Below are positions 1 through 23,040 of a DNA stretch of 23,044 nucleotides, in pieces. The translations under genes and the position numbers were made by a program. The notes below the pieces were generated by a model. That model was not told where the DNA came from, ran no database searches, and saw nothing but the letters and a program-made list of their open reading frames with translations. The first letter of the stretch is position 1; each line of letters opens with the position of its first letter. Origin of the DNA: Fonticula alba ATCC 38817 (Eukaryota > Protista > Nucleariida). Where the stretch lies: the NCBI GenBank assembly GCA_000388065.2, contig KB932221.1; one strand, given 5' to 3'.

Positions 1-240
1 GCGGATGAGGACGCGGATGAGGACGCGGATGGGGACGCGGATGAGGATGCGGATGAGGACGCGGATGAGGACGCGGATGAGGACGAGGACGACGATGAGG
101 ATGAAGACGACGATGAGGACGACGATGAGGACGAGGACGACGATGAGGACGAGGACGACGCCGGAGCTGATGCTGAAGAAGCTGACGTCGAGGAGGCTGA
201 GGCCGAAGATGCCGACGTCGAGGAGGCTGAGGCCGAAGAG
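1..240 (-). repeat. Coding tandem repeats of the Ser/Ala-rich stalk
   Basis: 12-nt unit GCGGATGAGGAC x7 (1-84), then GAGGAC/GACGAT-type units, then a 30-nt unit x2 (181-210, 211-240). On the minus strand these read SSSA and SSASASSTSA in the frame of exon 2. Confidence 0.85.
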
Positions 241-2784
241 GAGGCAGCAGAGGAGGAGGCGTCCAACTCGGCGGGGCTCGCCCGAAGTGAAGCCTGGCGG
301 CCGGACAAGGCGCTTGCCTGTTGGCCGGGAGATGGGCCGGCGAGGGGGTTGTTCGTGTGAACAAAGTCCGAATCGTCTGCCGAGGTTCGTGCATCGCCAA
401 AGCGGACGAGATCCCACGGATGGGCAACCAACCCGCCGGAGGGCGTTTGACGATAGAGCCAAGCCAGCGGCCGGCCGGTGGCCGGAGCCATGTGTGGCAC
501 CATGGTTGAGGGGCTGTCCGAATGGTTGTGCGGGTCGATCACCAGGAGCAGGCTGCCGTTGGACTGGAGCTCGAGGAGGTTGGCCCCGAACCGGGCTACC
601 GTGGGTGATAGACGCTGGCCAGGGGTGTTGGAAGTCCGGGTCCCGTTGATTTCAACCGGGCTGTGGGCCGTGAGGGCGCACTCGTCGGCCGGATTGGAGC
701 CGGGCAATGTGCAGCTGAGCACCATGCTGGACCGGCGGGAGTTATTTTCAAAGAGCAGGGTAAGATACACCCGGTTTTCCGAGACAACCTTGGTACTCAG
801 CTCCAGGAGAAGCTGCACCGGGCCGATGTTCGGGAAATTGGCCAGAGGCTGGAGCGGCAGCGGCCCGGTGGGATTGGCGACCAGTTGTGCTCCATCCAGA
901 GCTTGGAGTTGGCCATCATCCATGGCCACAATGAATGTCCCGGAGCCCTGGGAGTCAGCCAGCGAAGCATTGGACACATAGAGCCGCCCATTGCGGAGGG
1001 TGGCACGGGTGGAGGTCAAAGCCGACATCCGGCCTGCCCCTTGTTGGGGAATCGGCTGAATGGACGCCGCCATCCCCGACGAAGGGGCAGCCAGGATGCA
1101 TTCCTCCCCGGCAGGCTGGAAGCCCGGTGAGCATTCAGCCAGGCAGCTGGTTGGCGCCTGGCCGGGCGCGGTGGCCGGCTGCAGGAGGAAGCCCATTTCG
1201 CAGGCGGTGCACACTCCACCGACACAGGCACGGCAATGGTCCCCGGGACAGGGCTCGCAAGCATCTGGGGCGGGGGGCCGAAGGGGGGATTCGTGCGTCA
1301 AGCGGAGACAGTGAGCATGGGCGCATGTGAGAAAGGGTGGAAGGGAGAGAGAGAGGGAGGAGAGGGGGGGAGGAGGGAGAAATGTAGGTTGATGTGCTGG
1401 GAAAAGCAGGCGAGGGCCAGGCGTCGCCCGAAACGCGGCGAAGGATAAGCGCCAAGAGGGGAAAGGAGAGTGAGCGGAGAAATCCGGGCGGCCACGTACA
1501 TCGATGCGGCCCGAGGGACACTTGATAATAGCCATCTGCACAGCCGGCACACAGCTCCACCGGGGAGAGCAGCGGGGCAAAGGCGCGGCCCGGGGCACAG
1601 GCCCACCCTGCGCTGGACGAGTCACAGACGATGCTGGGATCGGCGCCGGCACAGGCAAACTGCTGGTCAGTGGGGAAGACACGCGAGCCGGAGCTCGGGA
1701 GCCAGTGCTCCATCAGTTCGCCCGACCCGTGGGCCATCAACGCGGGCAGGATGCCGGCCGAAGGGAGGTCCATCGATGCCGGAACCTGGACACGCTGCCA
1801 AAGGAGACCCTGTGGATGGTAGTTCACACGCCAGAGGACCGGCGAGTCGGCTGCCTGTTGGACCAGGAACAGATAGCCGGTGGGGCGGGTGATGTGCGGC
1901 ACGCGGGGCACCATGTGCAGGGAAAGGTTGTTCCGCGTGGCCGGCAGGGGATCCGTCAGGACATCCTGCCAGGCGCCATCACTGCTGACGCCGAGATAGA
2001 CCAAGAGCCGGGTGGCGGTCAGGACCACCAGGTCCATGCGGCTGGAGCTCGATGTGATCAGCCGAGTGGCGGCCAGGCCGAGCACCGGCTCATTGACATT
2101 GACGATCACCGGGTCCTCATCAAACTCGAGCCATGCCCAGCCGGTGGTGGTGGCTGCAAACAGGTGCCCAGGCAGGCCGGCGGTGGCCGAAGAGGCGCGG
2201 AAGGTCAAGCGCTCCGACTCCCATTCACCCTCGAATCGCTGGATGAGCTTGGCGTTGGAGCCCTCGAGTCCGACCAGTAGCCGGCCGGCTTGGCGACCGA
2301 TGGCCTCGGCCGCCAAGAGAGTGGCCGGCGGGTCGGATTGGGGGAGGTTGAAGATGTAGTTTCGGGGGCTGGTGGTGGTGAGGGCCAGCGTCCGGGCATT
2401 CTGCCAGGCAAACAGCGGAGACGCGCCGCGCAAGGGCAGGGCCATCAGCGAGCCGGCGGCCTCTTCGGGAATGCCCTGGAAGGTGAAGGTCTCGATGGGG
2501 TCCCGGGCGAACAGCGAGCCCAATCTCAGCCCCGGGAAGAGGGTCTGCTCGGTGCGCTGCTCGAAGAGGGCGCTTTCCAGGTGGCCAAGGGTGTACTGTG
2601 TGATGGGGATCGTGGGATGGATGCGCCCCTGGCGCGGTGCATCGAGGGGCCCCGATGTGTGGGGGCTCTGGACAAGCAGCAAGTCCGGCAGGTCGGCATC
2701 CGGGTCGAGGTCAGCGCGGGCCCGGAGTCTCACCGGGGCCAAGATGCCCAGGAGCAGCAGTGACTGCAACAAGCGCAGCAGCAT
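1..2784 (-). CDS. Large secreted/cell-surface Cys-rich protein, 5' part only: join(complement(1500..2784), complement(<1..1264)). Signal peptide, beta-rich (propeller-like) region, EGF/furin-like Cys repeats, second beta-rich region, Ser/Ala-rich stalk. May be the ectodomain of a receptor (kinase); the C-terminus is outside the window.
   Basis: ATG at 2784 begins MLLRLLQSLLLLGILAPVRLRA (signal-peptide-like); the in-frame upstream ORF extension is a CT-rich UTR. Exon 1 ends ...FACAGADPSIVCDSSSAGWACAPGRAFAPLLSPVELCAGCADGYYQVSLGPHR, followed by a phase-1 donor GTACGT at 1499. After the acceptor ccccgccccAG at 1266-1265 the frame continues Y-ACEPCPGDHCRACVGGVCTACEMGFLLQP...TSCLAECSPGFQPAGEEC (furin-like CxxC repeat) and stays open to base 1, ending in SSSA repeats. 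The + strand ORFs 663..1130, 1504..2280 and 2290..2763 are in-register antisense shadows. Confidence 0.88.
1265..1499 (-). other. Spliceosomal GT-AG intron, 235 nt, phase 1
   Basis: Donor GTACGT, long CT-rich polypyrimidine interior, acceptor CCCCAG. Removal joins two Cys-rich segments in frame. Confidence 0.85.
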
Positions 2785-3209
2785 GGGGGCATGGGCGGCG
2801 GGAAACCCGGGGAGGGGCACAGGCAACAGGCGAAAGTGGAAGAGAGAGAGAGAGAGGAGAGCCAAGAGGAAGAGCACAAGGGAAGCAAGAGGACGGGGGG
2901 GGAGGGGAGATGGGGTGTTCCGGCTCTTCCGGGCGACAAGGCAGGGGTCTTTAGAGTGCCAGAGGTGCCTTTCCCGCTGTGATGGTGCGGCGTATGATGG
3001 GATCTCTTGCGGGGAGAGGCCTGGGCAGGGTGCACGAAGAGTGCAAGCTGGCGGGAACAAGAGACAAGTGTGCTGGAGAAGGGGAAGCAGGACGAGCAGA
3101 AAGCCCAAGCGCAGTGACCAATTGCGCGACCGAGAGGGAGAAGGCGACGGGCACCGAGACTCGCGCACCCGCGCCGATGGGCATACGCCAAGACATTGTC
3201 GTTCAAGCT

Positions 3210-3332
3210 CACGCGCGCGTACCCATGCACACACACACACACACATTCACACACACATGGCTATGCCCAAAGACATACGCATTTACATTTACATACACAT
3301 TCACAAAGACAAATACACACACACACACATGC
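3210..3332. repeat. (CA)n microsatellite and degenerate NNNACA hexamer tract, about 430-550 nt upstream of the start codon at 2784
   Basis: cacgcgcgcgtac...(ca)n...tttaca tttaca tacaca ttcaca aagaca aataca cacaca. Confidence 0.8.
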
Positions 3333-7400: not shown

Positions 7401-8191
7401 TGTTGAATTGCGTGGGTCGATTGCTCCCCCCGCCCCTCCCCGGGCTGGCTGAGGCCATGGGAGCTTTGTCGGCGTGGGCCTGGCATTCATTGTCCAGGTG
7501 GAGCTGAATGGAAAGTGCCATTTGGGAATGACCCTGTGGAGGACCATCCCTTCGAGGCCGGCGAGGGCCATGGGCACGGGGATACCGTCATGGGGGATGT
7601 CCCTTCCCTTCCTCACGGCCTACTGGCTGTCCGTCGTCCAAGCAGCAAAGGCGCTGCCAGGGGCCTGCAGGCGACATGCCCTTGCTGGTGCCTTGTCGGG
7701 GCGGGGAGGAGCCTCGCCCTGGGAAGCGGTGTATGCGTCGTGCTGTCGAACACGCGGACATCAGCCCTTCTGGGGACCCCTGGCGGATAGCTTTTCCGCT
7801 CGTTGGGTCAGCACACTCATGAGTGCCATCACGGGGGAAGGGGGGCCGGGACCCCAACACCGGTGGGCCGGCGTGGAGACGGCACACTGGCGAGACCCGG
7901 TCACACCCAGGGCGGTGGGTGCCCGGCCGTGGGGTTGACAGACTGGCGTGCCGTGACGGCCCCAATCGAATGCGGGCGGGCCGAACGCCCACTTTGATGG
8001 GACTGCATGGCGGGCTATTGTCCGGAGCTCGGGCAGTCCCGAGTGTTGAAAGGCTGGAGTGGCCGGGGCCGTGGGCGAGGAGGGGCCACTTTCCACGGGG
8101 GCTGCCTTGGCGAGGGAGTGTGCGCCAGGAGCCGAGAGATCCCATCCCCATGAGCATAAATGGGATATGTCGGAGCAGCTCGTCCAAGAGT

Positions 8192-8263
8192 GGGAGATTA
8201 GTCTAGTGGTATGATTCTCGCTTCGGGTGCGAGAGGTCCCGAGTTCGATTCCCGGATCTCCCC
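8192..8263 (+). tRNA. trnP-CGG: tRNA-Pro (anticodon CGG), copy 1, intronless
   Basis: GGGAGAT/ATCTCCC acceptor stem; A box TAGTCTAGTGG; anticodon arm CTCGC-TTCGGGT-GCGAG; T arm CCGAG-TTCGATT-CCCGG. Closely resembles eukaryotic tRNA-Pro. T5 at 8268-8272. Confidence 0.95.
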
Positions 8264-8267
8264 GTTC

Positions 8268-8272
8268 TTTTT
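8268..8272 (+). terminator. Pol III terminator (T5) of tRNA-Pro copy 1
   Basis: TTTTT 4 nt after the discriminator base. Confidence 0.8.
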
Positions 8273-9086
8273 GGGTCTGGTACGATCATGGCTCCGTTCC
8301 GGGCTTTTTCCAATCCCTGCCTGGTGGCGGGTGGCGAATCAGGTCATTCCGCTTTTTTTTTTTTGGGAGCACACTCCTGCCGGGGGCGCCTGAGCGCGAG
8401 TGCGCCTCGCACACGCCCCGATGACTGCACATGTGGACCGCGCCCCATACGCGGGGGCCCGGTGGCAGTCGCGGTCCATTGATGACATCAACGCTGCCGG
8501 AGCGTGGCCCTCTCTGTTGCCGGCGCTGTCGCCGCCGTCTCTTGGTGGACAGGGGAGAACGTCGTGCGCCATGGTCCTGGTGCCGGGGCCCTGGACGCGA
8601 GGCCGGGTAGAGAGTGCGCCGGGCGGGCAAAGTGCCTCGTCAGAAAAATGCGTATGGGTGCCACGGGCGGGGTGCTGCTACCATATCGGGGCTGGGTAAT
8701 TTCATTATTTTTTTACCGGCCCCGGCGTCGAGGGCGAGAACGGTCGAAAGCCTGGCGAGTCCGGCATACCTGACAATTGTGGCGGAAGCCCCCAAGACAC
8801 AAAGACGCGCAGCCCCGACATCGGAAAGGGTTCATGTCCCGGGCTGGGTAGCTGATCGCTGGGGAACCGCGAAAAGCGCTCGGCTTCAATCGAGCTGGTC
8901 AGGACACTTCGCGGAAAGCTCTTCCCCACAGGACGCCCCACAGAGGCAAGCAGCGAGGGGATCCCACCGCGCGGCCTGCTGCATGGGAGAATCGGTGCGC
9001 ACGGCCGGGTCGGCATCACTGCGTGCCCCACTCCTGGGGACCATCGAGAGGCGAGTGTCGACCGTTGAATGCTACAGGGGCCTCGT

Positions 9087-9177
9087 TGTCCGAGATGGGC
9101 TCTTTCATTTTTCGCGACACACGAGATGAGCCGCTCTTTCAGTCTGTCCTGCCAGCTGAGGCCGTCCCCCCCCCCCC
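9087..9177 (+). repeat. ~91-bp direct repeat, copy A; ends in poly-C at the gap N 9178-9187
   Basis: tgtccgagatgggctctttcatttttcgcgacacacgagatgagccgctctttcagtctgtcctgccagctgaggccgt+C12, identical to 10531-10621. Confidence 0.9.
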
Positions 9178-9187
9178 NNNNNNNNNN

Positions 9188-9247
<60 letters not shown>
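9188..9247. repeat. (CT)n microsatellite directly after a 10-N gap
   Basis: Read directly from the sequence. Confidence 0.95.
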
Positions 9248-9255
<8 letters not shown>

Positions 9256-10459
9256 CTCTGTCTCTTTCTTGGCCGCGTGTGGAGGGGAGGTTTTTTCCAC
9301 TCAGAGTATTATTCGGGGGTTACCTTCGTTTGGGCTTTTTTTCCTCCCATGCCTTTTCGGCCGTCCGATGGATGGATGCATCTCACTTGGCAGACAGTGC
9401 CCTTTGATTGTGTCTTGGCCTGCCTCGGGGACCGGTCGGGCGAGTGGAGGACCGAGGGCTTGCCGAGGCCAATGACCTCGGGTGGCTCTCCCACCGCAGG
9501 CCCACTGGCGAGGGTACTCGGAGTGTAGGAGCCCCAGGCTCGACGGGCTCTCTCCCGGGCATGTGTGTGCATGCTGGCCATGTCCAGTCAGAGGAACTTG
9601 ACAAGATTCACCACACTTCCCGGTAGGTCCCCGGGACATGGATCGAGGATCCGCGCGGCGGGCCGAGATAGCGACCGGCCCGACTCGATCCCTCGCGCCT
9701 TCGAAGGAGCATACGAGATTGGTCGGCCTGCCGGTGACTGGTGGACAAGGTGCTGCGGGGCCGGGATCGAGGTCGGGAGCTTAGCGACATCCGCCTGGGG
9801 GGAGGCCCTCGGGAGACGTTTATGGCCGGCAACCGGTGCGCGGATATCGCCAGGACGGGAACAATGCCTTTGGCGACGATGACGAAGCCGTCCCCCGGGC
9901 ACCCCGCGGCAGGGGGTGACACTCATCCCCCCGCTGTCCCTGGTGCAGCCGGGTTGGGAGGCCGCAATTCTCTTGCCGTTGCCATGTCCCAAAAAGCGAC
10001 AGAGAGACGGCCAGTCACAACTCTTGGCCATCGGCGATGTCTTTCACTGTGGACATGGGCAAATGGTAGATGGTTCAACGGGGTCCAGCGGATGGAGGCC
10101 GCTCCAGCTCGCTCGCCAGGAAGTCCCCTCGGAGCACCTAAGGGAAGGGGGGGAGATCTGCTGCCTATTCCCCTCCCGGAAGGAGCCCACCCTTAAAGCA
10201 TGAGGATGCCGTGCGGTCCTCCAACAAGATGTCAAATCGGCCTGGGTCATGTCGCCCCTCCACGATCGGCCTCAAACGGGACGATTTGTTCCAGCGGCCA
10301 GGGGGGCCCACCACGGTAGGGGATCCCTAACCATGCACAAGACCGCAGGGGAGACAGGGGAATGGCCCTCCATCCAAGGGCACAGACCAAACACCCGCTT
10401 GACCACTCTCCTGGGCCCTCCATCGAGCGATTACCCCGGATGCCGGGCACACACACATG

Positions 10460-10484
10460 CTCTCTCTCTCTCTCTCTCTCTCTC
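10460..10484. repeat. (CT)n microsatellite
   Basis: Read directly from the sequence. Confidence 0.9.
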
Positions 10485-10530
10485 CTTCCCCCCCTCTCAG
10501 AGGGCCCGGTATCCGACGCACTGGCCCCAA

Positions 10531-10622
10531 TGTCCGAGATGGGCTCTTTCATTTTTCGCGACACACGAGATGAGCCGCTCTTTCAGTCTGTCCTGCCAGC
10601 TGAGGCCGTCCCCCCCCCCCCC
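10531..10622 (+). repeat. ~91-bp direct repeat, copy B
   Basis: Identical to 9087-9177; ends in C13. Confidence 0.9.
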
Positions 10623-11508
10623 GAATGCCGAGCGTCAGCCAAGGGGGCATGACAGCGGTCGGCCTCTGTGGTGCGTCATTCGCCCGGCTCGCCCACCAAG
10701 CCGGCCAGTCGTGTTAGGCGCCCGGGCCAACGAGGCGTTGGCCCTTGCCGTTGCTGAACCGCTTGTGGCTGTCAACATGCCGGAAAAGCCGGATCATGGG
10801 CTCCCTCGCATTCGATCGACGATGTACCTGGGAATGGGAACACGGACATGCGTCAGGTACACCGGTGAGGCGAGGGCCAGAGTCTCCCGGCCATGCCTCA
10901 TCAAGTTCACCGGCTGGTAGGGGCCAAGCTCCTCACTGGGACGTACCCATTCAGGGGAGTCCTGAAAGGCCGCACCCCCGACCGCTCGGTTCCCATGAGA
11001 CCAACACGCCGGGGGGGCTTGTCGGAATGCGGCGCCAAACTGGGCGCTCCGCGCGACAAGCAAAGATGCCATTGTCGTTCTCCGGCGCGGCCCGGCGGCC
11101 TGTGGAGATTCCCGCTGGGCGCCCCAGGCTTGGTGCCCGACAGGCAAAAGTGCCTCCTTGTGCTTGGAACATTTGGAGGGGCTGGTAGCTCGAGAAAAGG
11201 GGGCGCTCCCTCGTCGCATGGCAAGGGGAGGTCCTCTCCTCGGGGCTGGCCTCGGCATCAGACCATGCAGGCCCCGGACAGGCCGATGCCAGTCCGCACC
11301 GGTGGGGCCCGGGCTTTAGAGAGCGGCCATGCGGGAAGTTCACCGGGCTCCCGGGCGGAGGACTGCGACTAGATTGGTGGCTCGCCGGCTGCCCCTCACC
11401 GGTCCAGGGCAGGAGACGGCGCCTGTTGGCAAGGACAGAAAGGTGGGGACGAGGGGCTGCCATTCGGAACTAACAAATAGGAAAACCAGGGGCCACTCAC
11501 TCATCGGT

Positions 11509-11580
11509 GGGAGATTAGTCTAGTGGTATGATTCTCGCTTCGGGTGCGAGAGGTCCCGAGTTCGATTCCCGGATCTCCCC
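11509..11580 (+). tRNA. trnP-CGG: tRNA-Pro (anticodon CGG), copy 2
   Basis: Identical 72 nt to copy 1; T5 terminator at 11586-11590. Confidence 0.95.
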
Positions 11581-11657
11581 CATTCTTTTTCCTGCGGTCG
11601 GCATCGGGAGCATTGTGTGACTCCATCCACACCCGGGGGCAAAGAGTGGGGAGTGGG

Positions 11658-11658
<1 letters not shown>

Positions 11659-11691
<33 letters not shown>

Positions 11692-12024
11692 NNNNNNNNN
11701 NNNNNNNNNNNNNNNNNNNNNNNNNNNNNNNNNNNNNNNNNNNNNNNNNNNNNNNNNNNNNNNNNNNNNNNNNNNNNNNNNNNNNNNNNNNNNNNNNNNN
11801 NNNNNNNNNNNNNNNNNNNNNNNNNNNNNNNNNNNNNNNNNNNNNNNNNNNNNNNNNNNNNNNNNNNNNNNNNNNNNNNNNNNNNNNNNNNNNNNNNNNN
11901 NNNNNNNNNNNNNNNNNNNNNNNNNNNNNNNNNNNNNNNNNNNNNNNNNNNNNNNNNNNNNNNNNNNNNNNNNNNNNNNNNNNNNNNNNNNNNNNNNNNN
12001 NNNNNNNNNNNNNNNNCCCCCCCC
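11659..12024. other. (CT)n (11659-11691), assembly gap of 324 N (11692-12015), then poly-C
   Basis: Read directly from the sequence. Confidence 0.95.
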
Positions 12025-12211
12025 CTTGCCGAGCCTATAGGCCCCGCTTTCCGATCGTTTCGACACATCTTCAGCGATCTTTCCCCCCTTCAGAGATCCC
12101 GGGCAGCTGGCAGCGGAGGTCGGGTGGGCGGGGCCGCCGGATGGTGAACTTCCGACGCACGGACAACAATCATCTTTAAGTGATTGTATTTCGATCTGAC
12201 CACTTATCGGT

Positions 12212-12283
12212 GGGAGATTAGTCTAGTGGTATGATTCTCGCTTCGGGTGCGAGAGGTCCCGAGTTCGATTCCCGGATCTCCCC
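12212..12283 (+). tRNA. trnP-CGG: tRNA-Pro (anticodon CGG), copy 3
   Basis: Identical 72 nt to copies 1 and 2; T5 terminator at 12289-12293. Confidence 0.95.
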
Positions 12284-13883
12284 CATACTTTTTCGATCTT
12301 TGGAGCTTGCTCATCTTGCCCGCCCGCGCACCACCGGAGCCCCTCCCGGAAGATGCGCGACGGGGCACATGTGTCTCTTTTGTGCCCAACATCTGTGTGC
12401 GTTCAGACACGCACGCGATCAATGACTTTGGCTCCCGGGCCCGGCTGAAGGCATGTCAGAAACAGGGGTTTCCTGGCGGGTATGTCCTCCAGCGGGGAAA
12501 AGTGACCCCGGATGGGCAAGGGATTGGAGCTTGATCACCCCCGATCCCGATGAAGGGATTCCCACTTTCAAGAGCAGTCAACCAGGCATACTATGCTGGA
12601 CGAGGTCCGGTTCGAGTCGTGCCTCGCCTGTGAGATGTGGAAACTGCCCCGGAAGTAGGGAAGATGGGGGGGGGGGGGGGGGGCGGGAGATGGAATAGGA
12701 GACATCAGTCAGAGGAAGGGAGATTCTCCCCGAGAGGAACTGGGAAAAGAGTGGCCAACCGTTTGGGGATCCCGCGAGGAATCAAGCGGGTTTCGCGTGT
12801 CGAGGCAAGCGGCAGCCATGTTGGCGGGAAAAAAAAAACCCGCGCGCCTGCTCCTCTTGGATGCTGCCAAATCCATCAATCCGAGCAGGCGGCATGCTGG
12901 TCCTGGTTGGGGCATACTTACCGCCCTTTTGTCCTTGCCTCCGGGGTGTCCGAAATGGTCGGACCTTGGCACGACAGACGTGACTCCAAAGTTGGGGCGG
13001 ACGCGACATCGGGTGTAATCTCTCGGAGATGGTTTCGCTTGGGCGATCGCGACCGCAAGATATCCGCCTGATATTTCGGGCCTCCCAGGAACAGGCCAGC
13101 ACGGCATGAGAGCCACCCTCGCCGGTGAGGGAAATCGTCGGCCGCACTTTCGGCATCACTTGCCGTGAAGGGAGCCCGCTACAAAGCCTATGTGCAGGTC
13201 TTTGAAAAGCCACAATGGTCCAAGCCACGCTCTGAGACATTACGACCTCGGCTCGAGGAAGGCCACCCCAGCCAGGGCCTCCAAGTTTGCTTGAACTGCA
13301 GACACACGCACGGACGAACACACACACACACGCACACACACACACACCGACATGGGCCTTTCCCTCGCCCTGCGAAAGCAATTGTCTTCCCAAGCTGGGG
13401 ATGACCAAGTTACGGCCCTCGCTCTCTCGGCATGTTCCGCCGGGGCGATGAGAGGGCAGGAAGGAGCAGGGGATTAAAGAACTGCCACCTCAGACACATT
13501 GACTGGCGAGGGGGGAGGAGGGGGCGGCGAAGGACCATGGCCCTCCACGTACAAGTCGCCTGAGTGATAGCCATGCAGAGCAAGCGCCTCTTTGGCCAAA
13601 TGGGCCGTATTGCTTGAGACGGGGCCAGCTGGCCAGCCAGCCCGTAGCTCGGCGTGACATGACTCTCTCCCTGGTGATTTACCCCGAAGGGCTGGCAATC
13701 GGGTGCCATTAGATCTGGAAGGTGGGGACGATTCTCCGGCCACACGGAGGACGACAAAGAAAGTAGTGCTGACCGGGCGGGTAAGTTCGAATGCCCCGAC
13801 GCCCGCGGCCATCGGAGACTAGTGCGGACGTGCAAAAGGACTTTGACGTGTCCCCCGTTGTCGCGACCTTACTTTGGACGCAC

Positions 13884-16900: not shown

Positions 16901-18231
16901 GCTGGCTCGGGAAAATGAACACAAGTTCGGTGCCCTGTGGATGTTGAGATGCACGATGGTGCCAGGGCGCCCCCGACCTCATGGGCATTGATCGGCTGAA
17001 GGGTTTCCAAACACATACACAAATGCATGCCATTCTATTGGGTAAGGTGATCGATGTGTTGGCGATGACACCCTCGTCGGGATGGTGTGTACCCATAACT
17101 TGAAAGGAAGACTTTCCTGAGGACGAGGACGCTTGTCCAAGATAAGCCGACTGTGGAAAATGTCTCCCCTCTCAGGGCAGCCTCATGGACCAAAGGCGGC
17201 GTTGGAACCTCAGAGCAATCTCCGGTTACATATCGCGCCCCGCCCCTGAAAAAAAAGGCCCTTGGCTGTCTGCTCGCATGGGCCATGGGGACACCGCCCG
17301 AGACTGAATGTCTTTGAGGAAGGGAGCTCTCCTCCACTCGAAGGAACAACCGCATTGAACACTATGGTCTGGGACCATCAGGAGGGCGGCCCTAACGAAC
17401 CACAGGTCAGGCATAACAACTTGCCAAGTACCCTCGTGGACTGAGTCCACGACCCTTCGAGGTTCTTCACCGGGGCGAAGATGCACGGGACCCGGGAAGC
17501 CGCGGTGCCATCATAGTGAAGAAAAACATCGAAACGCGGCAGGAGCAAAGGGATCCTCGGAAGGACATTCCATCAAACATGATAGAATTGGGGCCCCGGT
17601 GCACTTGGAATATGCGATGGAAGGTGGATGGAGACCCGGCCTTGCCCGTTTCCATGAGAGTGGCACAAGCAAATGCACAGGGATAGCCAGGACGAATGGA
17701 CTCATTCTCGGCTAATTTTAAAATCAGCCCTTTTCTAACAGACACACCCTCAGGACAAGACCTTGGCCTCCCTGCTCCAATCCTGAAAGAGGGAAGTCTC
17801 TATTGCGTGGGAGCAGCGCCAGTGCGTGGAGCAAGAACGCCCTTCGGCAGAGGTGACTCCCCCTTGGTTGCGGGACTCTCTGGCAAACGAACATCAGAGC
17901 CCACCTACCCCCCTCCAGTACCGGCATCTGCCATTGACGAGGAAGGAGGGCCAAGACCAAGGACAACAGGAAAAACCATGTACAGAGGCCCTCGGGACCC
18001 GGCCCCTCCTTGGCATACTCCACAAGCAGTCACCATTGTCCCCCATAACCACCTGGCATGTCTTCCCCCCCCCCCCCCCCCCCCCCCCAACTTTGGGGTA
18101 GAGACGCTTGGCAACACAATTTGGGTACATTCATGAGCAAGCAGTATGTCCACCCGGACGCAAGCCAAAGGGATGCATGAAGAGAGGAAGACAGGAAGGG
18201 GAAAGAGGAGCCCCGGGGCTAAAAAGCAGAG

Positions 18232-18401: not shown

Positions 18402-19193
18402 TTAGGCAAGATCCCGGTAGTCATCCGCGACCAGGGCATACTTGTTGGCATCCTTGCAGTTGAGCTTGGTGAAGGTCTTGTAGCCGATGGAATCCTCCGG
18501 GCAGAAGACCGAGAAGGAGTAGGTGTTGTTGACCAGAGCACAAATGCCGAAGTCCTCGGCATACCGATCGACGATGCACTCAAAGGCATCCTCCAGGGCG
18601 CTGACACACTTCTTGTTGTTGCAAAGCGAGTCAAGAGAGAACCCGAGGAAATCGCCGTCCTCGCAGCTCTTGTAGGCACGGGTGAAGATCTTGTCCATGC
18701 CGATGTTGTCGCAGCCCTTCATCGGGAAGCTCTTGTTGCCGGCACTGGTAGGGTAGCGAGTCGGGCAGGAGAAGTACGAGAGATCGTCATTGGCAGCATC
18801 GGAATCGGGCTCGACCCTCTTGCAGAACTTCCGGTGCTCAATGGCATACTTGGAGCAATCCTCGAAGGCGTTCGAGGTGTTGACAGTCTTACCATCAAAG
18901 AGATTGGACTGCTCGACCATGCAAAGGCCAACCTGATGGGCACGCCGGAGGGCATAGGAAGAACAGGAGTCCTCCTCGATGGCGTCGGCGAAATCACGAA
19001 GGGCATACTCGCAGGGGTTGGAAGCGGAGTTGACCATGACACCGACCTCGTCGTTGATGGCCTGGCTAGCAACGCCCCGCTTAGCGGCAAAGCGGCTGGG
19101 CAGAGTAGCCAACTTCTTGGGGGCCTTCACGGAGCTGGCGGAGGCCACAGCCAGGATGGCGAAAAAGGCGAGCAGGAAGGTAGCCTTGAGCAT
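18402..19193 (-). CDS. Secreted 14-Cys protein, paralog 1 (263 aa), unknown family, intronless
   Basis: Start is AACG-ATG at 19193 (the ORF track starts 20 codons earlier at a GTG). Signal peptide MLKATFLLAFFAILAVASA; 14 Cys; strong C/G-ending codon bias; about 57% identical by hand count to 22276..23040 over the Cys core. Confidence 0.93.
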   Translation of the reverse strand: MLKATFLLAFFAILAVASASSVKAPKKLATLPSRFAAKRGVASQAINDEVGVMVNSASNPCEYALRDFADAIEEDSCSSYALRRAHQVGLCMVEQSNLFDGKTVNTSNAFEDCSKYAIEHRKFCKRVEPDSDAANDDLSYFSCPTRYPTSAGNKSFPMKGCDNIGMDKIFTRAYKSCEDGDFLGFSLDSLCNNKKCVSALEDAFECIVDRYAEDFGICALVNNTYSFSVFCPEDSIGYKTFTKLNCKDANKYALVADDYRDLA

Positions 19194-19240
19194 CGTTGGG
19201 GAGGGCGAGAGATTGGGGGCGAAGCAGACGGGGATGAGTG

Positions 19241-19387
19241 CGACTGAGGACACATGGATGGACTGAAGAGGTGGAGGGGCTGTCTTTTATACTTGCGGAA
19301 AAATATGATCCTGGCAGACTGGCCTGGATCATTTACACCATAAAGCCCCAGCGAAGGGCGTCGAGGGGAGGAGGGCTGACATATTGG
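19241..19387 (-). promoter_or_regulatory. Core Pol II promoter of paralog 1: CCAAT (19387-19383), TATAAAA (19291-19285), Inr-like TCAGTC (A at 19264; second copy with A at 19245)
   Basis: Perfect TATAAAA with an Inr-like TCAGT 27 nt downstream (canonical spacing) and a CCAAT about 95 nt upstream of the TATA. Confidence 0.7.
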
Positions 19388-19397
19388 CTGCATAGTT

Positions 19398-19483
19398 GGG
19401 GCGAGAGGGGGCGAGAGGGGGAGAGAGGGGGAGAGAGGGGGGGAGAGAGAGAGAGAGAAAGAAAGAAAGGGGGGTGGGGGGGG
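19398..19483 (+). repeat. 10-nt tandem repeat GGGG(C/A)GAGAG x~5 merging into a purine tract (G4/H-DNA prone), upstream of paralog 1
   Basis: ggggcgagag ggggcgagag ggggagagag ggggagagag gggggg(ag)n aaagaaagaaa ggggg t ggggggg. Confidence 0.8.
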
Positions 19484-19786
19484 TCCCCCACTCGGAATCA
19501 AGTAACAGGTGGGAGCATGTCCGGAGGGTAGAACAGCGATGAACGGGCTTGGGCCGAGGAAACGCGAGAACAACGCGCCTGATCGCCCCAATCCCGTCCT
19601 TTTACCCCGTTATAATGTGGCCTCATAAGAGACCTTCACCCCTGACCGATGTCTCAGATGAACACCCTGGTGTGAGGCAGCGTGGCCCTGGACAGCGAGG
19701 ACGGGCGGGGGCATTTGCGTCCCCGATTCATGCAAACAAATGCGCTTGCGTGCTTGTGGACGCCTCCGCGCGCGGGGGAGGGGGAA

Positions 19787-19788
<2 letters not shown>

Positions 19789-19842
<54 letters not shown>
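19789..19842. repeat. (AG)n microsatellite
   Basis: Read directly from the sequence. Confidence 0.95.
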
Positions 19843-20376
19843 GATGTACTCGAGCCTCTGGGGCGAGCCTTTCGAGGAGACAGAACTAGGACCTTGATGT
19901 TTGAGTCCTCGGAAGTGCCAACTCTGAACTCCAGAAAAGGCGGCGGCTCCGGAAGCGGGTGACGCACAAGGGGGGGGGGGGGATGTCTCCCCTGTGAACT
20001 CGACGCGGGGTCTAGGTCGGAGGATGGTCCGGGCCTCCAGGGGCCCGTTGGCAGCGCCGACTCGGGCGGGAACCGAGCCGGCCCCGGCCCAGGGCGGGGG
20101 CAACAGAAATCTTGAGTCGGAGGGGGTCCCTAAAAACCGATGCTGGTCCCTGGTCCTGGCTTCGCAGGATCTCCTGGCCACGCTCATCTGAGCGAACCAT
20201 TATATATGCAGCTCCATGGCCCTAAACCCACGCGATGGACCAACGACTACTCCTCATGCTCGGCCACCTGTTTGGGCGAAAGGGGCATTTCGCCCATGTG
20301 TAGCTGCAAGTTCGACTTTTAAAGGCAGGATTTTTACGCAGACAAGTTCGCGGGGCCCTTACTTGGTCTGTCGGCC

Positions 20377-20379
20377 AGA

Positions 20380-20424
<45 letters not shown>
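20377..20424. repeat. (AG)n microsatellite
   Basis: Read directly from the sequence. Confidence 0.95.
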
Positions 20425-20426
<2 letters not shown>

Positions 20427-20596
20427 CGAGCTCGCCCCTCGGACCGCGCGGATCGATCAACCCAGCAACGCGTCCTCATCCGCGATTACACTCAATAGGG
20501 CCGTCCCCCGGCTGCCCCCCTCCCCCCCCCTCCCTCCCCGAGCCTCCCTTTCTCGCATCTGGGGGACAAGCGCCCGGTCTGAGACCTTTCTTACAG

Positions 20597-20734
20597 GAGT
20601 GGCCCCTCGACCTGGAGATCGAAAGGATGCTCTCGAAGTTCTCCCGGTCCCGATTGTCCCTTCCAAATCTCGCTCAACACCAATCTCCCCTCAGGAGGGG
20701 CGTGAGCGATGTTGGCGCCGGTGTCTCCTCCACG
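20597..20734 (+). pseudogene. Isolated exon-like fragment (EWPLDLEIERMLSKFSRSRLSLPNLAQHQSPLRRG[VSDVGAGVSST])
   Basis: Acceptor ctttcttacAG; two phase-0 donors (GGC|GTGAGC after 20701, ACG|GTGAGG after 20734); 19 of the first 21 codons end in G/C. No partner exons found. Confidence 0.3.
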
Positions 20735-21721
20735 GTGAGGACAGTGGGAGGAAGAGCATCATGCTACCAGCAACCGGGCTGAGGATGCCCGCCATTGTCC
20801 AAGGGCTACTGCTCTCCAAGAGGCGCCTATGTCAGATGCTCGGACACATGCTGCTGCGCAGGACTCCGGACTAGTAGAGCCCTTCGAGAGCAGGATCCAA
20901 GGGCACCGTCTGGCGGGTAGACTGTGCTTGAATTTCGCCGGCGGCGAATCGTGGCTGGAAGCCTCTTGTAGAGGCCACAGCGGCGGATAGGATAGCGGGG
21001 CCATCGGCAGTCGGCACACCAGGGCAAGCCAATGGCAGAAGAGATCCAACGGTCCCGCAGACAAGACACCTTGGGGAAGAACAGCAAGTGGCCATGTTTT
21101 GTTTGCATCCGGCGGAGGCGTGAGCAATCCCGGGAGGGAGGGGGGGGGGAGGGGCGAGGGCAGCCAGGCCTGTATATGTGGGCCGAAAACCCTGAGAGCA
21201 CGGTCGGCTACCCTCCGGGCGCCGGGTTGGAGTCAAGGAGAAACGAGGCAGCCCGTGGTGTCCTTTTCCGGAAAAGCGAGAGCAACCCCGGCAGCTGGAG
21301 CAATTTGGGATGTGGAGAGTCCATATGTGCGGGACCAAAGTGTGTGGGCTTTTTTTCCCGAGGCTACTCTCATTCTCTTTGCACCCCTCTGAGAGGTAAT
21401 GCGACCAAAGGGAGGACAAAAAGGCGCGAACTCGAAGACGGTCCCCGCCGACAGGGGCCTGGCCACGGGCACTTGGGATTCGCCCTTCTCCTCGTCATCA
21501 TTGTCTTGGGCGTTGGGCAAAGGCGCCTGGGAGGCTGCCAGGGGTGCGCGTACACAGACTCGGGGGGTTGTGTTGGGGTGCCCCCCCCCCCCCCTCGGCA
21601 GGTTGGCTAGATTCTAGTCCCTCAAGTGCGAGGAGCAACTTCCTTTTGGGGTTTCGCAAACGGTATCTCGCACGTACCTCCTCCCTTTCGACGCATAATG
21701 GATCGTCTCTTTGGTGGCGTC

Positions 21722-21751
21722 TGTATGCACGTGCGCGCGCGCGCGCATGCA
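21722..21751. repeat. 30-nt perfectly alternating purine/pyrimidine near-palindrome (Z-DNA prone)
   Basis: tgtatgcacgtgcgcgcgcgcgcgcatgca. Confidence 0.85.
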
Positions 21752-22018
21752 GGGGGAGGGAACATGCAATACAAGCGCACTTCATGTGCATATCATTCTC
21801 CTTCCGTCTTCGAGGGGGGGGGGGGGGATAGAAAAAAGCTCTGAAGCCAGGTAACTTCTCTGACTGTGAAGGTATATCATCGCCCAGAGAACAGGATCTC
21901 TGGGCCATTGTGCCATCAAAAGTCGTCGACCGCTGCTTTCCAGCGGAGAGAGGGGGGGGAAAATATCAACAAGAAGTAGGCAGGATAATAATAAAGCAAG
22001 AAGGCAAGGTGTAAGACA

Positions 22019-22019
<1 letters not shown>

Positions 22020-22051
<32 letters not shown>
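22020..22051. repeat. Poly-G tract (32 G) downstream of paralog 2
   Basis: Read directly from the sequence. Confidence 0.95.
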
Positions 22052-22052
<1 letters not shown>

Positions 22053-22275
22053 GGGAGAATGCGTATATTTGTTGATTGCATCTGAATGCATGCAAGGAGA
22101 TGGGGGCACGGGGGAGAGAGGATTCCTAGAGCTTCTCCTTGGGTATGGCATCATCAAATGCATATCTGCCAGGCACAGGGGCAACAGGCAACGCATTGAG
22201 AGAAGAAGGAAGGGAGGAGGGCGGGGAAACGGAGAGAACCGTAGGAAGCCGGAAAACTGGAGGGACTCTTTCCTT

Positions 22276-23040
22276 TTAGTTGTTATCGGCGGGGGCAGGC
22301 TCGATGGGCTTGAGGTCGGTGGTCTTCTCGCTGTAGTCGTAGACGTGAGCAGGGACCTTGCAGTCGAACTTGGTGAAGGTCTTGTAGCCAACGGTGTCCT
22401 CCGGGCAGAAGACCGAGAAGGAGTAGGTGTTGTTGAGGAGAGCGCAAACGGAGTGAGGAGAGGCGTAGCGGTCCATGCCACACTCGTGAGCCTCCTCCAT
22501 GGCGGCAATGCACTTCTTGTTGTTGCACAGGGAGTCGAGAGAGACACCGGCGAAGCCGCCGGAGATGCAGTTCTTCTCGAGCTTGGCCTCAATCTTCTCG
22601 AGGGCCAGGTTATCGCAGCCCTTCTTGGGGAAGCTCTTGTTCCCGGCGTAGGTCTGGTAGCGAGTGTAGCAGTACTCCTCGTGGAGCTCGTACTCGGCGG
22701 CATCCGAGTCGGGCTCGTGCTTCTTGCACCAGTCGCGATGCTTGATGGCAATCTCCGAGCAGTCCTCGAAGGCCTTGGAGGTGTCGACCGGCTTGCCGTC
22801 GTACTTGTCGGCAGCCCAGACAATGCAACGACCAAGCTCAACAGCGATCTCAATGGCGTCATCATCACAGCGGTCGCGCTCATTCTCGATGATGTCGGCA
22901 AACTCGGCAAGGAGGTGCTGGCAGGGGCTCGGGGCCTTGTTGACCAGGATATCAATGTTGTTGCTGGCAGGAACGGCGTTGGCGGTGCCAACGGCGGCCA
23001 GAGCGGCGAAGAGAGCGACAAAGAGGGTAGCCTTGATCAT
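22276..23040 (-). CDS. Secreted 14-Cys protein, paralog 2 (254 aa), unknown family, intronless
   Basis: Kozak-like CACC-ATG; signal peptide MIKATLFVALFAALAAVGTANA; the same 14 Cys as paralog 1; strong C/G-ending codon bias. Confidence 0.95.
   Translation of the reverse strand: MIKATLFVALFAALAAVGTANAVPASNNIDILVNKAPSPCQHLLAEFADIIENERDRCDDDAIEIAVELGRCIVWAADKYDGKPVDTSKAFEDCSEIAIKHRDWCKKHEPDSDAAEYELHEEYCYTRYQTYAGNKSFPKKGCDNLALEKIEAKLEKNCISGGFAGVSLDSLCNNKKCIAAMEEAHECGMDRYASPHSVCALLNNTYSFSVFCPEDTVGYKTFTKFDCKVPAHVYDYSEKTTDLKPIEPAPADNN

Follow-up and report, generated by a model that had tools for sequence, protein, structure and literature searches.

Lineage-specific families of secreted, cysteine-rich proteins are common in protist and fungal genomes. 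Here, we describe a pair of neighboring genes, denoted A and B, in a 23,044-nucleotide stretch of the genome of the amoeba Fonticula alba (hereafter, the window, which corresponds to positions 1-23044 of contig 21 in the 31.3-Mb assembly of 214 contigs), together with the family to which these genes belong. As in other families of this class, the F. alba proteins have a signal peptide and a scaffold of cysteines in fixed positions, between which the residues evolve fast, and the genes are likewise multi-copy, partly tandem, intronless and without homologs beyond a narrow lineage. The differences are that the F. alba domain is large (about 200 residues, with 14 cysteines) and helical, and that F. 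alba is not a pathogen but an amoeba that lives freely and feeds on bacteria; the likeness is to a class, not to a homologous family, and the members of the F. alba family are known from sequence. The family is a new one within this common class and is unrelated to any described family; because such families are common, a specialist would not be greatly surprised by its existence. The evidence presented below makes it very probable that the family consists of eight paralogs restricted to F. alba, routed to the secretory pathway by a conserved signal peptide, and that the protein is a glycoprotein of about 26 kDa, weakly acidic to neutral, with a compact, all-helical, two-lobed domain stabilized by up to seven disulfides.

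Several described proteins invite comparison. Dictyostelium SP96/SP70 and EcmA/EcmB are cysteine-rich repeat proteins of the spore coat and of the stalk matrix. They resemble the F. alba proteins in being secreted and cysteine-rich, and some carry Ser/Gly-rich tails like those of two F. alba paralogs, but they are built of short tandem cysteine repeats as opposed to a single, non-repetitive helical domain, so that the analogy would be a functional one only. Classification of the F. alba proteins with the tandem cysteine-repeat type of matrix protein was rejected, given that no Pfam repeat family was matched and that the two lobes of the domain are not detectable as duplicates of each other (hhalign of the N-terminal half against the C-terminal half, probability 0.07%). 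Secreted phospholipase A2 is a 14-cysteine, helical, secreted protein with a CC-x-x-H-D-x-C active-site motif; this candidate was rejected as well, considering that the F. alba proteins contain no adjacent cysteines (minimum spacing 4), have no Pfam match and possess a domain of about 200 residues compared to about 120. GFR-alpha is extracellular, all-helical and stabilized by many disulfides, and no other protein of this description was among the best-ranked Foldseek matches of the gene B model, but the match is at noise level (6q2o_C, E 0.63, probability 0.09, template modelling (TM) score 0.13), the cysteine pattern differs, and GFR-alpha was absent from the best 50 matches of VIA-align. 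With neither a Pfam match at E<=10 nor a whole-domain superposition, membership in the GFR-alpha/GDNF receptor family is not supported.

The gene pair and its paralogs in the F. alba genome

Gene A (18402..19193, minus strand) is an intronless coding sequence of 263 codons plus the stop codon that is annotated in the public database as a hypothetical protein. The corresponding open reading frame (ORF) was listed as 18402-19253, starting from GTG; the 263-residue protein begins at the first ATG, at position 19193, with the M-[IL]-K-A motif, as in all relatives. It comprises a putative signal peptide (approximately residues 1-19) and a 14-cysteine core predicted to be helical (approximately residues 50-247). 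Gene B (22276..23040, minus strand), also intronless, encodes 254 amino acids, with the signal peptide at approximately residues 1-22, the 14-cysteine core at approximately residues 34-231 and an acidic, unstructured C-terminal tail. The two proteins align with 113 identities in 200 positions (57%, BLASTP E 1e-82) and a single 2-residue gap, and all 14 cysteines coincide; the gene pair with a shared 14-cysteine scaffold is thus confirmed, far above chance. The cysteine spacing is 17(15)-13-21-10-18-17-15-13-4-9-11-12-14, where the first interval alone differs between the two genes (15 vs 17). This spacing agrees exactly with that given in a first-pass annotation of the window, which had counted about 109 matches among 190 core residues by hand; the five invariant blocks listed there (AFEDCS, EPDSDAA, AGNKSFPxKGCDN, SLDSLCNNKKC and NNTYSFSVFCPEDxxGYKTFTK) are all found in the BLASTP alignment. 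Within the gene A and gene B ORFs, third-position GC rises to 0.78-0.88 in a single phase, whereas the profile is flat, at 0.55-0.67 in every phase, in the spacer between them. Because codon periodicity is confined to the two ORFs, both on the minus strand, we conclude, as the annotation also stated, that the genes are intronless and co-oriented, with non-coding DNA between them.

Copy number, a point raised in the first-pass annotation, was examined by whole-genome search. A six-frame search with gene B detected 8 loci, and the same 8 were recovered with a profile of all members (E 1e-92 to 1e-117 for all eight, with nothing further ranked above E 0.18). In addition to the window genes, there are single copies on contigs 5, 13 and 16 (H696_03664, H696_05689 and H696_05990), a second tandem pair on contig 18 (H696_06104 and H696_06103, co-oriented and about 3 kb apart) and a divergent copy, H696_04791, on contig 8, with 20-24% identity; neither type of search revealed a third copy on contig 21, of which the 10 kb next to gene B on its upstream side (23045-33044), past the window, read as N throughout. 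The ORF is uninterrupted across the conserved domain in all eight paralogs. Thirteen of the 14 cysteine positions are invariant throughout the family, and the remaining one is missing in H696_06103 only; the family alignment misplaces the first cysteine of H696_04791. The cysteine spacing is identical in five members; in the other three, some intervals are longer or shorter by 1-3 residues. The gene models are already public as hypothetical proteins, and, as far as could be found in the literature, the family, its scaffold and its restriction to F. alba have apparently not been described.

In the maximum-likelihood tree, gene B groups with the copy on contig 5 (support 82/87), those on contigs 13 and 16 form another group (86/91), the contig-18 pair is monophyletic (85/99), and gene A stands alone. 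Because gene B clusters with the contig-5 copy (H696_03664, its closest paralog, with 71% identity) rather than with gene A, the window pair is an old arrangement and not the product of a recent local duplication. The description of these genes as a tandem pair thus holds in the sense that they are homologous, co-oriented neighbors but not in the sense of recent duplication in place. The pairwise ratios of nonsynonymous to synonymous substitution rates (dN/dS) among the seven close paralogs, estimated with the Nei-Gojobori method (NG86), range from 0.44 to 0.92, those with the contig-8 copy being saturated. These values are inflated because the extreme bias in GC content at third codon positions (GC3) depresses dS; they therefore indicate fast protein evolution under constraint rather than positive selection.

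For H696_06103 (contig 18:132806-133639, minus strand), the public model comprises 233 amino acids, compared to 278 in the genomic ORF, the difference being an intron in the model that removes about 45 residues from an otherwise continuous frame; the annotated intron is probably false because the removed residues align with the rest of the family and carry three of the scaffold cysteines. This paralog lacks scaffold cysteine 6, and thus has 13 cysteines, and shows the weakest codon bias in the family, with an effective number of codons (ENC) of 49.9.

The first-pass annotation presented strong codon bias as a special feature of the window genes and, on that basis, considered the proteins abundant. 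Neither claim survived comparison with control genes. Genes A and B have GC3 of 0.83 and 0.78 and ENC of 31 and 36.8, respectively, which is within the range of 20 F. alba kinase domains (median GC3 0.87, ENC about 35) and weaker than the bias of actin (GC3 0.84, ENC 26.9); within the family, values similar to those of actin are confined to the paralogs on contigs 13 and 16. Because the codon bias of the window pair is typical of the genome, high abundance of these proteins is not supported, and codon bias was dropped as a proxy for abundance after the kinase and actin controls. The Logan source flag, considered as evidence of expression, was uninformative, F. alba actin itself being without this flag, and the literature searched for the family locus tags and for F. 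alba stage transcriptomes or secretomes yielded nothing usable.

Secretory features, predicted fold and search for relatives

Judging by hydropathy and inspection of the sequences, seven of the eight members have a nearly identical predicted signal peptide, in which M-[IL]-K precedes a hydrophobic core of about 15 residues (maximum 12-residue hydropathy 2.9-3.1) and small-residue cleavage motifs of the ASA/ASG/ANA type; both window proteins show this arrangement, in line with the signal peptides originally proposed for them. The conservation of the signal peptide (0.72) is at least equal to that of the parts of the mature domain (0.52-0.71). The seven predicted mature proteins are 25.7-29.4 kDa in size, with isoelectric points (pI) of 4.8-7.2 and a cysteine content of 5-6%. 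In H696_04791 (contig 8:593343-594176, minus strand), neither the ORF nor the spliced N-terminus of the annotated model nor the 1.3 kb upstream was found to encode a signal peptide, which makes the 5' part of this gene model doubtful. This protein ends with a 17-residue hydrophobic tail (hydropathy 2.84) that follows a small-residue NSGPAS stretch, a configuration compatible with a glycosylphosphatidylinositol (GPI) or membrane anchor. The two N-glycosylation sequons reported as conserved, NKS and NNT, are indeed present in both window proteins but, family-wide, occur in only five and three of the eight members, respectively. The alternation of conserved blocks with variable segments, noted originally for the window pair, is apparent in the conservation profile of the family: conservation peaks (0.69-0.71) from residue 81, in the third helix, through the C-terminal lobe, and is low in the first two helices (0.54) and in the C-terminal tail (0.37), which is Ser/Gly-rich in two paralogs.

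The structure was modeled with AlphaFold2 in two runs on the shallow, 8-sequence family alignment. For full-length gene B, the mean predicted local distance difference test score (pLDDT) is 76 and the predicted TM score (pTM) is 0.66, with core blocks at 80-97; for the gene A core, the respective values are 84.5 (mean) and 0.70. Both models are predominantly helical, as the first-pass annotation had anticipated, and the helix order is identical: a predicted N-terminal lobe of three long helices is followed by a long loop bearing the NKSFPKKGCDN block and by a C-terminal lobe, in which five to six helices are accompanied by a small beta-hairpin. Foldseek comparison gave no matches with E below 0.5 in PDB and none below E 0.39 in BFVD, and the fold searches overall produced only generic helical matches. 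These searches gave no evidence of a known fold, and the domain possibly represents a new disulfide-rich helical one.

Search for relatives outside F. alba was conducted at several levels. In Pfam, hmmscan with all eight members at E<=10 yielded nothing above the cut-off. The only recurring entry was DUF7107 (PF23416), which appeared for four of the eight members with 14.5-14.7 bits (E 0.03-0.045) against the gathering cut-off of 24.6 bits; the match spans about 31 residues over the C-x4-C-x9-C-x11-C stretch. Being far below the cut-off and covering 15% of the domain, it was treated as a chance match of cysteine patterns. Among PDB sequences, no match to the family profile scored below E 0.3. 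A word-indexed search of 5.8 billion clusters retrieved F. alba paralogs only, and a HMMER profile search of 1.84 billion representatives, which, being free of length restriction, takes in fusions and fragments, produced four matches, all of them members of the family. The matches from the cluster and representative searches were all to H696_03664, H696_05689, H696_05990, H696_06103, H696_06104, H696_04791 and the two window genes. The ESM Atlas contained no usable neighbor and no model of the family, and a scan of JGI metagenomes with a 6-sequence alignment detected no relative. As a control, an F. alba SGK-type kinase was run against the word-indexed database and gave thousands of matches, including the EukProt sequence of Lithocolla globosa and environmental sequences that are 74-81% identical. 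The detection of the nucleariid Lithocolla shows that this database includes data from sister lineages, so that the blank result for the family is meaningful.

The statement of the first-pass annotation that the scaffold belongs to no recognized family is accordingly borne out: Pfam, PDB sequences, and the profile and word searches gave no match outside F. alba, and a confident full-length match to a Pfam family or to a fold in the structure libraries searched was sought and not found. In particular, for EGF, CFEM, saposin, hydrophobin, elicitin and stanniocalcin, named there as families that the pattern does not fit, hmmscan of the eight members at E<=10 and the fold search showed no match, and for GFR-alpha, there was no Pfam match at the same threshold, with Foldseek matches at noise level.

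Flanking DNA and the rest of the window

A TATA box, TATAAAAG, is located at 19284..19291 on the minus strand, 91-98 nt upstream of the gene A start codon. It is the only match to TATAAAWG in the 23-kb window, on the strand of gene A, compared to 0.08 expected. One such element, at -98 to -165, is present in each of the five paralogs that have a signal peptide and a readable upstream sequence, in the form TATAAA[AT]G in four of them and TATATAAATG in one; no TATA box was found upstream of the divergent paralog on contig 8. Comparison of the promoters and untranslated regions in the paralog flanks uncovered nothing else in common except for simple repeats and microsatellites, and there was no convincing recurrence of neighbor genes around the paralog loci. 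Two ORFs, at contig 13:23743-26499 and contig 18:142488-142997, which are 41% identical over 70 amino acids (E 5e-11), lie 6-7 kb from two different family members; this pair may represent a common domain rather than a conserved neighbor.

The non-coding spacer (19292..22275; the genes are about 3.1 kb apart) forms the upstream flank of gene A and the downstream flank of gene B. It contains tandem repeats at 19398-19462, 19789-19842, 20377-20424 and 22020-22055, of which the second and third are AG microsatellites and the last one is a 36-nt run of G. Long G/C homopolymer tracts (22020-22055 and approximately 18065-18090) are found 220-340 nt downstream of both stop codons, in opposite orientations, such that the sense strand is poly-C for gene B and poly-G for gene A; similar homopolymer or microsatellite tracts are present next to most of the paralogs.

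Elsewhere in the window, a 703-aa ORF (1135-3246, minus strand) lies in a stretch where third-position GC is strongly periodic, and another ORF, of 214 aa (5-649, plus strand), is located at the window start; neither has a Pfam match. There is little coding periodicity between approximately 3 kb and 18 kb, which places genes A and B in a gene-poor stretch. At 7764-12455, short translated segments, 77-97% similar over 23-32 amino acids, recur on both strands (7.7-9.5 kb vs 10.2-12.5 kb) and adjoin a masked stretch (11692-12016) and a dip of the GC content to 0.44; possibly, this region is a repeat or the remains of a mobile element.

Possible roles of the family

F. alba is a sorocarpic amoeba among the nucleariids, the sister group of fungi, that forms a fruiting body on a stalk of secreted matrix and produces walled spores and cysts (PMC9097593). 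Given these structures and the apparent absence of the family from the sampled relatives, we rank first, tentatively and without giving it even chances, a role of the proteins as an extracellular binding module of the matrix, the cyst or spore wall, or the cell surface. Under this scenario, the protein would function outside the cell as a rigid, disulfide-locked binding module, a possibility suggested by the conservation pattern, given that, cysteines aside, the best-conserved residues are in predicted loops of the linker and the C-terminal lobe, whereas the N-terminal lobe and tails are variable. The most conserved stretches outside of the cysteines (NKSFPKKGCDN, DSLCNNKKC and YSFSVFCPED..GYK), which are predicted to form loops and short helices in the linker and the C-terminal lobe, could jointly make up a surface through which all paralogs contact the same partner, be it a polymer of the matrix or wall or a component of the cell surface, whereas the variable N-terminal helices and C-terminal tails would provide paralog-specific surfaces. 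The divergent paralog H696_04791 might be membrane- or GPI-tethered, the setting would be the secreted matrix, the cyst or spore wall or the surface of an aggregative amoeba, and the TATA-box promoters would provide for regulated, stage-specific expression.

Several considerations weigh against this possibility. Proteins with a structural role in a matrix usually consist of repeats or low-complexity sequence; the F. alba proteins are compact single domains with no internal repeat and with short Ser/Gly tails in two paralogs only. No carbohydrate-binding or adhesion motif was recognized in the family, and the codon bias of the window pair gives no sign of high abundance. Secretion, location and role are predicted from the sequence for every member, and the seven disulfides, their pairing and the surface position of the conserved blocks are predictions from models that are based on eight sequences. 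In addition, the nucleariid data covered by the searches come mostly from transcriptomes, with the genome assemblies of Parvularia and Nuclearia outside the search. The boldest form of the hypothesis, in which the family would represent a new all-helical, seven-disulfide fold of the Fonticula lineage and a main organizer or component of the Golgi-derived secreted matrix of the volcano-shaped stalk or of the cyst or spore wall, appears improbable.

Among the alternatives, an unlikely but reasonable one is a secreted protein of the feeding stage, either a carrier of lipids or other small hydrophobic ligands or a prey-processing factor acting on the bacteria that the amoeba eats. Saposins, elicitins, non-specific lipid transfer proteins, CFEM and odorant-binding proteins are disulfide-locked helical binders of ligands or lipids. 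A compact, all-helical, disulfide-rich secreted domain is the typical architecture of a carrier, and the AlphaFold2 models are helical; multiple paralogs with variable helices fit this possibility, as does the collective feeding of F. alba on bacteria (PMC9097593). However, neither the sequence nor the structure searches matched the family to a known carrier, the domain of about 200 residues is 2-3 times the size of the known small helical carriers, and the acidic-to-neutral pI (4.8-7.2), unlike that of cationic antibacterial proteins, disfavors an antimicrobial function of that kind.

Lower still is the likelihood that the proteins are secreted signaling or recognition ligands involved in aggregation or collective behavior, with a conserved receptor-facing surface and variable, paralog-specific ones. 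The alternation of conserved blocks with fast-evolving segments, the relatively high dN/dS, and the restriction of the family to a lineage with independently evolved aggregation are in line with such a role, and the TATA promoters are compatible with regulated expression. However, no receptor partner was found, there is no conserved neighbor gene at the paralog loci, and the dN/dS values are subject to the inflation by codon bias discussed above. Furthermore, kin-recognition systems usually show allelic polymorphism, whereas here there are eight dispersed paralogs in one sequenced strain, with no sign of such polymorphism.

We further considered the possibility that, rather than having a new fold, the family has diverged very far from a known helical, disulfide-rich fold of extracellular proteins, GFR-alpha-like or Duffy-binding-like, which we regard as quite improbable. 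The weak Foldseek matches to GFR-alpha2 (6q2o_C, cited above, and 6gl7_C, E 1.5) and to the DBL6-epsilon domain of VAR2CSA (2y8d, E 1.9) point in this direction, against the lack of a Pfam match and the different cysteine pattern described for GFR-alpha. Finally, GC-rich DNA yields numerous long spurious ORFs, dozens of them in the window, and H696_06103 has lost a scaffold cysteine and shows weak codon bias, but the interpretation of these genes as decaying duplicates or spurious frames can be dismissed with near certainty, considering the strong frame-specific codon periodicity in exactly these ORFs, the eight intact frames, the conservation of the cysteine scaffold and signal peptide, dN/dS below 1 and the correctly placed TATA boxes.

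F. alba is the only organism known to have aggregative multicellularity on the opisthokont branch that includes fungi, and we know of no protein of its stalk matrix or of its cyst or spore walls that has been identified so far. Species-restricted, apparently secretory, present in eight copies with TATA promoters and without a detectable relative or fold match, the family is a concrete set of candidates for the lineage-specific extracellular biology of this organism. Should it turn out to be merely one more orphan secreted family, it would still deserve a family definition, and the larger picture would be unchanged. If, in contrast, they do have a new fold and are a main organizer or component of the stalk matrix or the wall, the proteins would represent a lineage-specific invention tied to an independent emergence of aggregative multicellularity in the fungal branch of opisthokonts.

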